Source: Ophelia neglecta (lineage: Eukaryota). Taken from it: a stretch of 64,000 bases of DNA. Positions 25,472 through 64,000 of this stretch are shown piece after piece. Within the stretch, counting starts at the first letter, position 1. Each line of letters begins with the position of its first letter. The translations under genes and the position numbers were made by a program. The stretch lies in NCBI GenBank assembly GCA_965285935.1, contig OZ260662.1, positions 70,866,001-70,930,000 of the forward strand, in the 5' to 3' direction. The notes under the pieces were generated by a model. It searched no databases. It had not been told where the DNA came from and worked only from the letters and a program-made list of their open reading frames with translations.

Positions 25472-25503
25472 TTACGGCGCCGCACCTACTGTTGAAGTTT
25501 CTT
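25472..25503 (-). CDS. Mucin/SCO-spondin-like probable terminal exon (EETSTVGAAP*)
   Basis: tttttacag acceptor, phase 1 matches donor at 25735; alternative is read-through to TAA at 25721-25723. Confidence 0.65.
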
Positions 25504-25734
25504 CTGTAAAAACACAATCCACATTGATTACTATGACCGCTTTGATAAAAGACTGCGGCGATTATCGCCAGATTATGAACATTACAACTTTAGACTGCAT
25601 GGATATTTATAAAGGCAGTAATGCCTTCTCAATATATATACATTTGGTATTCTAGCGCATTATTCCAAAAAATGAGTCCTTACACATCGATTCCATTGCC
25701 ATAGAGAAAAATAAAGGCACTTAAGTCAACGTAC

Positions 25735-25876
25735 CGCCAACACATTCTTTACAGGCACATGATGTCATCATCATGACCTCTACGGCAAGGTCAGAGCCAT
25801 CTGGGCAGGTCAGAGTGATTCCTGTGTAGTCGCCCTCACCGGCGCAACATTTACATTGCTTGTCGTGATACAACTC
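25735..25876 (-). CDS. Cystine-knot (CTCK) second half (ELYHDKQCKCCAGE...LTCPDG...TSCACKEC)
   Basis: atttcag acceptor; CxCC, CPDG and CxC..C pattern. Confidence 0.92.
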
Positions 25877-26180
25877 CTGAAATACAACATACCAACTTGG
25901 TCAGCCATATTCAAAGCATGGATCGGTTGTAGTTTGGATGCCTCACTTTAATAATGCATAATAACCAGTGAATTACTGCCAACTAGTGGGTTAGAATAAA
26001 AATGATCAAAAAAATTTAGCAAAAAAAGTGGAAGACTTTTAGCTCAACATTAAAAATATTAACATCGTTTTCGGCACAAAAACACCATATTTTGTCTACT
26101 TTATACCAGAACTTACTGACATTGTTTTAAAGAAATTTAGAAGAATTACAAGTTATGAAACCTCAAATATATAACCGTAC

Positions 26181-26381
26181 CGTGTCTGATCCCGGTATAC
26201 GGACTGTGTAGTGGTCATTGCTATCACATGAACCATGACAATATGTGACATTTATTTCCTCCGAGACACAATTCTCTGCTTCTACTTTGGTCACTTCACT
26301 AGCAAGTGTGCATGGCTTAATGGGCTCCGTGGGAGGAACGCAGTTACAGCATTCGCCCTCAGTTGGCTCATTGACATTCGG
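26181..26381 (-). CDS. VWC tail plus CTCK first half (GECCNC...PCTL...NCVS...TYCHGSCDS)
   Basis: 201 nt, phase 0-0; CxGxC knot motif. Confidence 0.92.
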
Positions 26382-26684
26382 CTGAAACACAAAGCAACAA
26401 TATGGTTAATTTACAAAGCTCAAATATTGAAACTTCAGTCACCCGATGAGCGTGAAATTAAACATGAAAACTATAGTTTAAACCCTCGACTATTTGGGTC
26501 CCTCCCTATATTAACTGCAAGGTGCATGATTAATATGTAGCAGTCTCCGGGGGGCTAAATAATAAAGGACTATTTCGTCTGTCTGAAGATACGGCGACAT
26601 GGTTGCCATTTCGTTTTCGCTGCTGCTAATACAACATAATCATGAATATTTTTCAAGAGAGTTTAAAAAGGAAATACAACTTAC

Positions 26685-26742
26685 ATATTCACAGTCGCAT
26701 GTTTCCTCCTGACAGACTATGACTCCTTCGAGGTTACACATA
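26685..26742 (-). CDS. VWC-like exon (CMCNLEGVIVCQEETCDCEY)
   Basis: cttacag acceptor, gtaagt donor, phase 2-0. Confidence 0.88.
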
Positions 26743-27130
26743 CTGTAAGAAAGATATCGATATCATACCGTGCATTGAAAAGTGGATATTTTGTTTTACA
26801 CTTTACATGCATTTGAAAATGAACTAAAGTAATATAGGCCTATTATGTACCGAAAGTTCAATGTATTTTGAAACGAAATACTTTGGCATCGACGTAGTTA
26901 AAGAATATTTATACTATTATAATAAAACACCATAATAGGTATCGTGGATTTATCTCCCGCACGATAGATATCAACTGTATAAGGTAGGATATATAATGTA
27001 TCAATACGGAGATGCACTGTCTGTCAATGCCCTTCTGCACTTCTATTGTTGTTTATAACATATTCTTTTGGATTTCTATTGTTGACACTTGTTTGCCCAG
27101 AAAGATAATATAAATTGGCCCCATCCTTAC

Positions 27131-27292
27131 CATATTTCGCACGATGTTTCGTTGATGGTGGCGGTAGGCGCGTACGTGTTTCCGAGATGGTCTGTGCATT
27201 GTGGACAAGGCTGCTCATTACAGTCTCGAGAATCAGTACTTATACCCTCACATGGTTGGCCATCATTCTGCAGTTCTGGATTGTTGGGAAAT
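27131..27292 (-). CDS. TSP1 end plus VWC-like start (RFPNNPELQNDGQPCEG...CNEQPCPQC...SCEI)
   Basis: 162 nt, phase 2-2. Confidence 0.9.
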
Positions 27293-60457: not shown

Positions 60458-60611
60458 CTGGTGTGAAATATTCGCAAATTTCAACAGATAAGTCGTTAAT
60501 TATGACATCACTTGATCCATTGCGATAGAAAACAAATTCCACTTCGTTGCCCGTTTTACTTATACCGTAAAGTTGTATTGTGTCAGTGGCATCAGGGTTA
60601 TCAATCGGCTC
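60458..60611 (-). CDS. Type II module exon B, unit 6
   Basis: 154 nt, open. Confidence 0.85.
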
Positions 60612-61303
60612 CTATGCAACATGGAAAGCGGCAAGACACCATTACTAATCACCACAACTAGTATTACATACCCAAACATTGTGGTTTGAAGACAAAATAA
60701 CGGCCAATAAACAATATCTGAGGAAGGATTCAAATGTTTTCTTTCAACTTGAGTCGAAAACTTAAATTTTAGCCAGAGACATATAACAACAACTGGCCAA
60801 ACGAAGAACTTGAATTCCAAATAATGATTTCAGGAACAAACCAATCCATTCAAGGCTTAAGCGCCCACTAGGTTATATATGCGTCTTAAAGTAAAACAAG
60901 TTCCGAGCCATTTACAATGACCCCAATAGACGAACAAGTCCATAGAAACAGCACAGTTGGGTTGATTCTTCTGACAATTTATTCAAAGAATAGCTAGGTG
61001 TTAATTCGTTAGGCCTTATTACACGTAGCTGTTAAGGGTCAAACGCATGTTATCAACAGCAGCATAACACTATATTGTGTCTATGGGAATAGATAATGCC
61101 CTCCTCTTTCATAAACTAGGATCCTGTCCTGTTTTCGGCCCATTTTCCTCAGATATCCTTTTATTGCTACGAACTTGAAAAGTCAGACGCATAATTACAT
61201 ACGAATATTTAATACATGTATATATATGTATATATATATATCTTATTACAAGCAGTCAACAAATATTGCTCCTACTTGAGCGGTCAACAAATATTGCTCC
61301 TAC

Positions 61304-61584
61304 CCCATCAGACTCATCACCGCCAAATCTAACTTTGTATCTCGATGCACCAGTGATGTTGAATGAGTAGCCTATAAAATTATACGGCCCTGGCGGATTT
61401 ATCATCTTCAGTAGTAAGCCGACCGTGGTGCTTGTGCCGGGGACAGTGTATGAGCCACTTGGACTTCCAAGCCAAGCTGGACTTGCGTCACTCGTAACTT
61501 CTCCATCAGGAGAAGTCCCAAATAGAGCGATTTCAGGGTTTCTCGTGTTGAAATCAAACACAGTTGATTCCAAACAAGGCGTAA
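61304..61584 (-). CDS. Type II module exon A, unit 6
   Basis: 281 nt, open. Confidence 0.85.
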
Positions 61585-61712
61585 CTAGAATGGTGCAAAA
61601 AATAATAAGGCAGTGCACTGCAAGCTTCCTAGAAGGCAAATAGTTATATGCTAGGGGTTTTGCGAGATATATGGCAGAAGCACATTTCCACTAAAGATAA
61701 TTCGATACGTAC

Positions 61713-62309
61713 CACTAACAGTTGACGACAACGTAGTTTGCGATGTTGAGGGAACAGTAGTTGTAACGGTAGAACTTGCGGTAGTTGTGGGTGCCGTGGT
61801 TGTTAAGGTAGTGGGTGCCGAAGTTGAGGCAGTAGAAGGCGCGGTAGTTGTGATAGTCGTTGGAGCTGTTGTCGGCGAAGTTATGGGTGCTGTTGTCGGA
61901 ATAGTTGTGGGTGCAGTAGTGGGACCAGTTGTAGGAGCTGTTGTCTGCACAGTTGTGGGTGCTGTAGTTTGAGCAGTTGTGGGTGTTGTTGTCGTCACAG
62001 TTATTGGTGCTGTAGTTGGTGTAGCAGTAGATGATGTTGTTGGAGCAGTTGTGGGGGCTGTTGTGGGCACAGTTGAAGGTGCTGTAGTCGATAAAGTTGT
62101 GGGTGCTGTAGTTTGAGCAGTTGTGGGTGCTGTAGTTGGAGCAGTTGTTGGTGCTGTAGTCGGTGTAGAAGTAGGTGATGGTGTTGGACCAGTTGTGGGT
62201 GCGGTTGTGGGCGCAGTTGTGGGGCCTGTTGTCTGTGCAGCTGTGGTAGCTGTGGTTTGAGCAGTTGTGGATGCTGTTGTCGGCACAGTTGTCTGTGATG
62301 TAGTTGGTC
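61713..62309 (-). CDS. PTS exon, type II unit 6
   Basis: 597 nt, open. Confidence 0.88.
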
Positions 62310-63593
62310 CTGAAATATTTAACATGTAATCAAGTATCGCTTTCATGCCCGCAAATAGAATTCCACGTCCTACCGTTGCAAATTATTAAAGTAGACATGA
62401 TCTAATAGCTGTAGTATTTCATGGTGACGTCGGGCTAGTCTGGCATACCTCGATAGTTACATGTGTGCCCTAGGTCTGATTTATATTACATACTCCTGAA
62501 TAACAATGCATATTTTAAAAATAAATGCCTTGTATTCATTCAAAGCGCGAGGGAAAACCTCCAAAAAACAAAGTAGAAACCAACGGGTAACACGGACGAA
62601 TGGAAGAGTTTTTAGAACATATTTTCGGGTAAACCCATTGTAAATTCTAGGGGACACGAGACCACTCAAACCAAAAAGCCTTTTAAACTGCTAAAAAGGA
62701 AAGTGTTGTGTTTGATTCAGTAACAAACAGTAAACCATTTCCAGCTTGAATGGTTCTGATTTGTCCATATGTTCAAAGTTGACAATTACATATTTATCGA
62801 AATAGTTTCAAATAATGGATCAAATGTATGATGAATATTAACTTATAAGTGGTGTCTTGTTGGACCTTCTGGCAACAGGGTCATGTCAGTCGGCCCCACC
62901 TGATTTTACGGAGAGGAGGTGTTGTCTTTTCTCGAATTGAAAGTCTTAGCGGATTAAGGGACGTATATCTATATACACAAGTCTTGATTAAGTATTTTTG
63001 TGTCCGAATAAAAATCCAATTCGACGTAAGGAAGAGGAATCTTTTGGCAGGGTTTCTGCCGCTGGACTGCCCTATTCTGAACCATGCTTTAGGTCGCCTT
63101 AGTTCGTTTGCGCTCTTGTGTCTGCATTCAACATACTTTTACAAGTATGGCCTTTAAATTTTTAAATTTAGTCAACTGACAGCAATGACAATAAACAATT
63201 ATATTACTCGTTCCTATCAACTTTCGTCATTAAGGGAATATTAGGAGATAAATGGCATTCAGACTGGCAAGCAATGACTGACATAAAACACCTGAAATTA
63301 GGTTTCGAACTGACATCCTATATGTAGGATGGATCTGCTGCTGTCCAGAGCTTTTCAAATGGAACCGATTATATTCTCTCTAAATGCATATTATCACAAT
63401 AGAAACCTAATTTCCTTGTCTTTAGCTTAATCTGATACATATAAACTCGTTTCAAGCTTTGCCTAAATAACCTTAATATAGCGAACTCCTGTTTTCCTTC
63501 TCATGCAGAAGCATCTGTTATAATTGGAAATAAACATTTTACGTGGTTTAAAATGGAAGACATAAGTCAAAGTTGATTAGAAAAATCTATTAC

Positions 63594-63747
63594 CTGGTGT
63601 GAAATATTCGCAAATTTCAACAGATAAGTCGTTAATTATGACATCACTTGATCCATTGCGATAGAAAACAAATTCCACTTCGTTGCCCGTTTTACTTATA
63701 CCGTAAAGTTGTATTGTGTCAGTGGCATCAGGGTTATCAATCGGCTC
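63594..63747 (-). CDS. Type II module exon B, unit 7 (rest of unit outside window)
   Basis: 154 nt, open. Confidence 0.85.
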
Positions 63748-64000
63748 CTATGCAACATGGAAAGCGGCAAGACACCATTACTTATCACCACAACTAGTAT
63801 TACATACCCAAATATTGTGGTTTGAAGACAAAATAACGGCCAATAAACAATATCTGAGGAAGGATTCAAATGTTTTCTTTCAACTTGAGTCGAAAACTTA
63901 AATTTTAGCTAGAGACATATAACAACAACTGGCCAAACGAAGAACTTGAATTCCAAAAAATGATTTCAGGAACAAACCAATCCATTCAAGGCTTAAGCGC

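Follow-up and report, generated by a model that had tools for sequence, protein, structure and literature searches.

The window, a stretch of 64,000 nucleotides (nt) of the Ophelia neglecta genome (contig OZ260662.1, positions 70,866,001 to 70,930,000), contains the 3' third of a mucin-like gene located on the minus strand. The sequence-only reading of the window had traced this gene up to position 64000; it continues for about 135 kb upstream. Coordinates up to 64000 refer to the window, and those preceded by "ext" extend the same numbering upstream (contig position 70,866,000 + x); on this strand, a higher coordinate is more 5'. Taken as a single unit, the gene would cover about 174 kb, with roughly 320 exons and 19,500 codons in all, an estimate obtained by summing exon lengths. 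In its middle, Thr/Pro-rich stalks separate small folded modules, which number about 86 and fall into two sequence types.

Cassettes and tail within the window

The young array (44870-64000 within the window, minus strand) is a tandem series of cassettes with a start-to-start spacing of 3131-3137 bp, the copies of which were 98-100% identical as determined with Tandem Repeats Finder and a repeat finder. Six complete cassettes and the third exon (63747-63594) of a seventh are located in the window, and six further young cassettes are found upstream of it. Base-by-base reading of one cassette confirmed the unit proposed by the sequence-only reading, 3.13 kb with 1032 coding nt (344 amino acids, aa) in which stalks alternate with a module of about 145 aa. 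The reference cassette has three exons of 597, 281 and 154 nt, all bounded by an AG acceptor and a GT donor, with phases of 1 to 1, 1 to 0 and 0 to 1, respectively, and its product is a 199-aa stalk followed by a 145-aa module with one cysteine near either end. Exon A (52910-52314, minus strand) encodes the stalk, composed of 48% Thr, 17% Pro, 14% Ala and 10% Ser. Exon B (52185-51905, minus strand) encodes the first 93 aa of this module, called type I, and opens at a conserved cysteine (T-P-C-L-E-S), while exon C (51212-51059, minus strand) encodes the last 51 aa and terminates with a second conserved cysteine followed by Pro-Gly.

A BLAST map of the three exons showed that either module exon is present 12 times. 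The stalk exon likewise occurs 12 times and is 597 nt long in ten copies, 561 nt in one and 477 nt in one, each length a multiple of three. All exon copies of the young array have AG/GT borders and are free of stops except one exon C (45016-44870), discussed below. The long intron of every 3.13-kb unit also holds a 102-aa open reading frame on the plus strand (50314-50622 and, for example, 53450-53758 and 56581-56889), which may be a mobile-element fragment amplified along with the cassette.

A 702-nt stalk exon in phase 1 to 1 (42894-43595, minus strand) lies between the young array and the old array (31586-40018, minus strand). The latter has units of about 3.8-4.1 kb and contains three modules of type I, along with two stalk exons of 189 nt (37825-37637 and 33763-33575). 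The three copies of exon B (281 nt) are at 40018-39738, 35953-35673 and 32130-31850, and those of exon C (142 nt) at 39611-39470, 35550-35409 and 31727-31586. Comparison of the old and young modules showed 54-57% protein identity and equal phases, and the two cysteines, at the start of exon B and near the end of exon C, are invariant across both arrays; in F5/8C domains, a disulfide links the first and last residues. Two repeats were observed in the old-array introns. The first is a 301-bp tandem duplication (36886-37490, two copies, 97% identical), which accounts for part of the difference in length between the old-array units (3823 versus about 4060 bp), and the second is a long trinucleotide microsatellite (32161-32330), the frames of which read poly-Tyr, poly-Ser or poly-Val.

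The tail of the gene is a chain of 11 exons on the minus strand. The AG/GT borders, the compatibility of phases and the absence of stops were checked for each exon, and all junctions between the last module exon and the stop codon at 25723-25721 are phase-compatible and stop-free. The order is short Thr/Ser, Cys-rich, TSP1, TSP1, TIL, Cys-rich, TSP1, Cys-rich and cystine knot. The chain starts with an 87-nt Thr/Ser-rich exon (30991-30905, phase 1 to 1) and a Cys-rich exon (30538-30334, phase 1 to 2) negative in Pfam. These are followed by a Cys-rich lead-in with the first TSP1 repeat (30138-29924; PF19028, 1.1e-11, and PF00090, 3.8e-9), the second TSP1 repeat (29626-29453; PF00090, 1.9e-10), the TIL exon (29149-28900; PF01826, 2.2e-6) and, 3' of it, a small Cys-rich exon (28403-28357). 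The third TSP1 repeat is split between an exon encoding its first half (27792-27714; PF00090, 24.8 bits with a cut-off of 21.6) and one encoding its second half and a Cys-rich stretch (27292-27131). After another small Cys-rich exon (26742-26685) come the two exons of the cystine knot, the first with a C-x-G-x-C motif (26381-26181; PF00007, 7.8e-5) and the second including the stop codon (25876-25721; PF00007, 6.4e-7, 30.1 bits). The sequence-only reading of this tail held for the three TSP1 repeats and the TIL domain, which were recognised by Pfam, and for the cystine knot, in which 11 cysteines were counted, while the "VWC-like" label that it gave to three Cys-rich stretches, including the exon at 30538-30334, is based on the cysteine pattern alone and found no match in Pfam.

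Arrays and head upstream of the window

A search of the whole 762-Mb genome with the module exons revealed more copies upstream of the window and, for type I and type II modules, no match outside the locus. A further 170 kb of upstream genome was brought in, and a k-mer periodicity scan showed one unbroken block of cassette arrays at ext 30-172 kb. This block is composed of the old type I array (ext 31.6-40.0 kb, unit of 3.8-4.1 kb), the young type I array (ext 42.8-81 kb, unit of 3.13 kb), a type II array (ext 84-149 kb, unit of 2.395 kb with two sub-units) and shorter type II arrays (ext 149-172 kb, units of 1.5-1.96 kb), with degenerate cassette remnants between arrays at ext 81-84 kb and 172-173 kb.

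The type II module has about 147 aa, starts with E-G-P-C and ends with A-C-Y-H-P-G; its two exons follow a Thr-rich exon of 63 nt. The phases of the type II cassette are those of type I (1 to 1 for the stalk, 1 to 0 and 0 to 1 for the module exons), and cassette borders are in phase 1 on either side in all arrays. Intact type II exons numbered 67 for the first and 68 for the second module exon, in addition to 83 short stalk exons, while type I was represented by 12 young and three old modules. Decayed partial type II first exons, in which the first cysteine is changed to tyrosine and the frame is truncated, were also observed between intact cassettes at ext 158000-171200; they are probably pseudo-exons left by uneven duplication.

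Four single-copy modules of the same general kind, each of two exons, are located at ext 178-184.6 kb, and the head of the gene lies 5' of them. Four LDLa domains (PF00057, E = 3.7e-6 to 1e-12) were found there, together with three VWD, three C8 and four TIL domains recognised by Pfam, on the minus strand and about 120-135 kb upstream of the window. The VWD-C8-TIL assemblies that the sequence-only reading had suggested looking for upstream are thus present, in the form of three units plus one extra TIL domain. The head also contains a weak TB-like stretch and an EGF exon, the latter 5' of the VWD-C8-TIL units.

Fold, selection and conservation of the modules

The type I module exons gave no match in Pfam, the F5/8C profile PF00754 included. 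A profile made from five diverged copies of the first type I module exon was searched against 1.84 billion representative proteins and gave 25 matches at E <= 0.001, the credible ones being short open frames in eukaryotic DNA assembled from environmental samples or read archives. Long bacterial matches (P0004, P0007, P0008, P0015 and P0019) were rejected as partial, multi-stretch alignments in repetitive surface proteins. The relative P0002 (266 aa, E = 5.8e-12) contains a whole module and a Thr/Ser/Pro stalk in a single open frame and could be aligned to both module exons of the window with 26-34% identity; its full length had no match in Pfam even at E <= 10.

The AlphaFold2 model of P0002 was all-beta, with a predicted local distance difference test score (pLDDT) above 90 over residues 10-145. 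Foldseek comparison of this model with the PDB gave IFT25, APC10/DOC, CBM32 and F5/8C domains as top matches. The results of VIA-align, a search independent of Foldseek, showed Z scores of 10-13 and root-mean-square deviations of 2.5-3.4 Å over 112-127 aligned residues with IFT25, CBM32, the DOC-type domains of BIRC6 and HERC2, neuropilin b1, factor V C2, discoidin I, CASPR2 and DDR2. The Z scores were 10.6-11.0 for factor V C2, discoidin I, CASPR2 and DDR2 and 11.8-13.0 for CBM32, IFT25 and DOC, so that the placement is at the superfamily level only, since the latter group scored at least as high as the discoidin domains. The type I family is predicted, by way of P0002, to be a jelly roll of the galactose-binding-domain-like kind (discoidin/CBM32/DOC). 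This bears out the view of the sequence-only reading that a module other than CysD interrupts the stalks: no CysD-like match was found in any of the exons scanned with Pfam, and the interrupting modules have two cysteines and a predicted jelly-roll fold. A fold search of the Atlas returned only generic bacterial jelly rolls of the carbohydrate-binding type, with TM scores of at most 0.5. For the type II module, the Atlas feature search gave no usable match, and the sequence search of the PDB gave only matches to designed repeats, which were set aside as spurious.

Comparison of ten aligned young units showed that pairwise diversity was 0.55% in exons and 2.4% in introns, that is, 4.4 times lower in exons, and that indel columns numbered 7 in exons, all from one deletion, versus 218 in introns. 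The ratio of nonsynonymous to synonymous substitution rates (dN/dS) was about 0.25-0.3 among the old copies. Between old and young modules, the proportions of nonsynonymous (pN) and synonymous (pS) differences were 0.27 and 0.78, the latter being saturated, and the introns were unalignable, sharing only stalk-type repeats. Low exon diversity, a dN/dS of about 0.3 and conservation restricted to exons across species argue for selection on the coding sequence, and the cassette exons thus appear to be under purifying selection. The same data bear on the idea that the young arrays are a recent, partly decaying macrosatellite in or beside a once-functional gene, with many silent pseudo-exons and perhaps a pseudogene as the result. 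Very recent amplification, visible in copies that are nearly identical including their introns, would fit it, as would the one frameshifted exon, the decayed module exons of the 1.5-1.96-kb array and a stop in one type II copy. However, only one exon is broken among the 12 + 12 type I and 67 + 68 type II module exons, the exons vary far less than the introns and the stalk variants remain in frame. Together with the dN/dS value and the retention of the cassette design in other species, these observations make a decaying macrosatellite quite improbable, and we favour arrays that are maintained as coding sequence.

At least two other species retain the cassette design. In a contig from ENA sample ERZ25069296 (L019), the exons for VWD3, C8, TIL, four LDLa domains and four single modules stand one for one in the order found over 12 kb of the head (ext 190.0-178.1 kb), and protein identity is 40-70%. 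Another contig of this sample (L018, ctg19991) has a tandem array of at least 12 type I units, with a unit length of about 1.02 kb. In these units, a single exon of about 800 nt encodes both a type I module and a stalk of about 110 aa, and an intron of about 205 nt comes after it. By this comparison, the intron that splits the type I module would be absent in that species or gained in the Ophelia neglecta genome. Two diverged type II cassettes, with the exon order kept, introns unalignable and adjacent modules about 60-65% identical, were found in SRR24653972 (L020). For the tail, ERR14113986 (L021) showed protein identities of 84% for the TIL exon and 95% for the next small exon, with an unalignable intron, and the sole match for adjacency of tail exons in other species was on a 1.35-kb contig.

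Long tandem repeats that are nearly identical are prone to assembly errors, and the array could in principle be an over-expanded repeat. The k-mer depth of contigs was about 313 on the cassettes versus about 33 on the unique flanks, a ratio of about 9-10 in two runs, which indicates that the reads carry roughly ten copies and that the array is no invention of the assembly; the three runs in which the locus was found come from one sample and are possibly the assembly's own data. The differences between copies are scattered along them, the period varies from 3109 to 3137 bp, and arrays are also present in related species. An assembly artefact is therefore the least credible of the explanations considered here, and extremely improbable.

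Gene unity and relation to known mucins

We consider it probable that most cassettes are contained in a single secreted product. The exons are all on one strand, their phases form an unbroken chain, and the stretch between head and tail showed no signal peptide and no exon of the start or stop-bearing type, which argues for one gene. Domains of the polymerising kind in the head and a cystine knot in the tail point in the same direction, as do the single modules resembling type I that adjoin the LDLa domains, an arrangement conserved in another species. The discovery of a head of the SCO-spondin type upstream means that the two ends of the gene match each other, the middle being mucin-like.

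The product would be a secreted, disulfide-polymerising and heavily O-glycosylated glycoprotein of the invertebrate group of SCO-spondin-like gel-forming mucins, and is likely to be an external mucus, adhesive or tube-lining material. In VWF and MUC2, the C-terminal cystine knot dimerises and the N-terminal D assemblies multimerise. By analogy, the cystine knot would dimerise the tails in the endoplasmic reticulum, and the D assemblies would later join the heads into linear polymers, while the stalks would become bottle-brushes of O-glycans. The beads, which would have a lectin-type fold and occupy the structural position of CysD, may form cross-links that set the properties of the gel, either by binding glycans or by self-association; this proposal is based on the many carbohydrate-binding modules and discoidin domains among the nearest relatives of the fold. 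The length of the protein would evolve by unequal crossing-over of entire exon-intron cassettes, with homogenisation of the young arrays, and phase 1 at both cassette borders means that a change of copy number or the skipping of exons stays in frame.

Several points weigh against this reading. That the arrays are spliced to one another and to the tail, and thus the single transcript, is something that we infer: the run search recovered no RNA run for the locus, but just three runs from a single sample, the kind of which is not recorded; these contain 93-96% of the words of the locus, introns included, so they are probably DNA. At the 5' end, the first exon and the signal peptide, the second feature that had been suggested for an upstream search, were not found in ext 198.4-203 kb, and the exon with a C-C-x-G-W-x-G-x-x-C motif matched PF07546 (EMI) weakly, over the last 18 positions only and below the cut-off (E = 0.017). 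The fold of the window module was assigned through a homologue that is 26-34% identical to it, and the model of the type II first exon alone was unusable (pLDDT of 56.6). No significant hhalign similarity was found between type I and type II for either exon, and only the phases, the similar size, the two terminal cysteines and a similar C-terminal motif suggest a common origin of the two. Glycan binding by the beads is weakly suggested at best, as DOC and IFT25 domains, which have the same fold, bind proteins. Lastly, exon C of the 3'-most young cassette (45016-44870, minus strand) has a 7-nt deletion, which leads to a frameshift and two stops if this exon is included, in which case translation would end before the TSP1/CTCK tail.

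This exon is the sole broken one among the 36 of the young array. When contigs from the three runs were placed on 42800-46800, they left 44140-45479, with the site of the deletion, uncovered. The deletion may be genuine, the exon may be a pseudo-exon that is skipped, or the assembly may be in error at this site. Skipping, which is an assumption, of the defective cassette would preserve the frame, since the borders are phase-symmetric.

The locus could also be expressed as several transcription units or as isoforms that skip arrays, instead of one product of about 19,500 aa, for example as a head and type II gene with a separate type I and TSP1/CTCK gene, or as transcripts from which whole arrays are skipped. 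No RNA run was among those recovered, read-through would stop at the frameshifted exon, the arrays are separated in places by degenerate remnants of cassettes (ext 81-84 kb and 172-173 kb), and the limpet proteins P-vulgata_3, which resembles the head, and P-vulgata_6, which resembles the tail, are separate transcripts, one of them incomplete (PMC7333891). However, short-read assembly over a repetitive middle would itself yield separate limpet transcripts, and a cystine-knot tail without a secretion signal would be meaningless as an independent gene. Given also the common strand, the chained phases and the conserved position of the single modules near the LDLa domains, we regard several units as unlikely, and retain the single secreted product.

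The next gene downstream of the mucin-like gene is an intronless 358-aa open reading frame (21137-20061, minus strand) for a ZIP zinc/iron permease (PF02535), the best named relatives of which are from the annelid Capitella teleta (36%) and then from a bivalve (26%), in keeping with an annelid genome. Two unrelated minisatellites are also located downstream, at 5329-6131 (12 units of 67 bp) and 1928-2265 (2.9 units of 116 bp). The next gene upstream (ext 219300-225300, minus strand) was seen by eye to contain SUEL-lectin-like and CUB-like regions, membrane segments and a proline-rich tail.

Comparison with vertebrate SCO-spondin showed that three VWD-C8-TIL units and LDLa repeats at the head are shared, with a weak EMI-like match here, as is a tail in which TSP1 repeats are interleaved with TIL and Cys-rich linkers and which ends in a C-terminal cystine knot. 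Vertebrate SCO-spondin also has a discoidin (F5/8C) domain and roughly 25 TSP1 repeats; its domains are listed in PMC7333891 and PMC4948705. In contrast, the tail described here has only three TSP1 repeats and one TIL domain, the long TSP1 region is absent, the middle is made of about 86 modules and Thr/Pro stalks, and the length of the protein would be about fourfold. A search of the Ophelia neglecta genome with the VWD2 exon gave no paralogue at E <= 1e-5.

The features of a gel-forming mucin are also present, namely three VWD-C8-TIL units, proline-threonine-serine (PTS) stalks (12 long and 83 short) and a C-terminal cystine knot. As with the CysD domains of MUC2, MUC5AC and MUC5B, small folded domains, which here may contain a disulfide, interrupt the PTS stalks at regular spacing, whereas the predicted fold is unrelated to that of CysD and the cysteine content differs, with two cysteines here. 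Vertebrate PTS/CysD regions are mostly contained within one large exon.

The novelty of the class is smaller than the sequence-only reading had implied. Previous work has shown that invertebrate gel-forming mucins group with SCO-spondin, that F5/8C characterises the lophotrochozoan mucin-like proteins, that LDLa is the mark of SCO-spondin and that VWD units occur together with F5/8C in hemolectin (Lang et al. 2016, PMC4948705). The lophotrochozoan gel-forming mucins and hemolectin share with the present gene three VWD-C8-TIL units, PTS regions and central domains of the discoidin type, predicted as such in the present gene, and the N-terminal region of these mucins groups with SCO-spondin (PMC4948705). 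However, they have a few F5_F8_type_C domains, which Pfam recognises, and often CysD, instead of dozens of Pfam-negative beads in cassette arrays, and the present gene has, in addition, a tail bearing TSP1 repeats and LDLa repeats.

In the limpet, the adhesive mucus contains an SCO-spondin-like head protein and a protein with four TSP1 repeats and a cystine knot (Kang et al. 2020, PMC7333891). By domain description, P-vulgata_3 (three VWD, C8, TIL and five LDLa) resembles the head of the present gene, and P-vulgata_6 (four TSP1 and a cystine knot) its tail (PMC7333891). Both were found by proteomics in the secreted adhesive mucus, and P-vulgata_3 is expressed in the pedal sole (PMC7333891). 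Unlike the gene described here, they are known as two separate transcripts with no repetitive middle (PMC7333891); it is a matter of speculation that they represent the two ends of one such gene. In an annelid, expression of SCO-spondin has been reported (Helm et al. 2017, PMC5543218).

We found no description in the literature of SCO-spondin-like mucins beaded with discoidin-type modules. What is new is a frame of the SCO-spondin type around about 86 Pfam-negative beads of two orphan families, one of which, type I, would be a jelly roll according to the model of its homologue, and the alternation of beads and stalks in phase-symmetric exon-intron cassette arrays, a design conserved in at least two other species. 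Two orphan module families are defined, with about 20 credible relatives among the 1.84 billion representative proteins and, in at least one of them, a predicted lectin-type fold; they are candidates for cross-linkers that bind glycans in mucus or tube material. Should the gene be expressed as a single product, the protein would be among the longest of animals and a natural example of polymer length and bead number tuned by copying exon-intron cassettes.

We propose, as a tentative possibility, that this gene is the annelid orthologue of SCO-spondin, and that it became, in the spiralian lineage, a giant external gel-forming or adhesive mucin with a middle of beads and stalks. If this orthology is true, the protein of the Reissner fibre would have arisen from a surface (mucociliary) mucin in which the central cassettes were exchanged for TSP1 repeats, and the head and tail proteins of the limpet would be the two ends of one such gene. 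The gene links the grouping of invertebrate mucins with SCO-spondin (PMC4948705) to the SCO-spondin-like proteins of spiralian adhesive mucus (PMC7333891), and it provides a concrete gene on which the descent of Reissner-fibre material from surface mucus, an idea discussed by Helm et al. (PMC5543218), may be tested.

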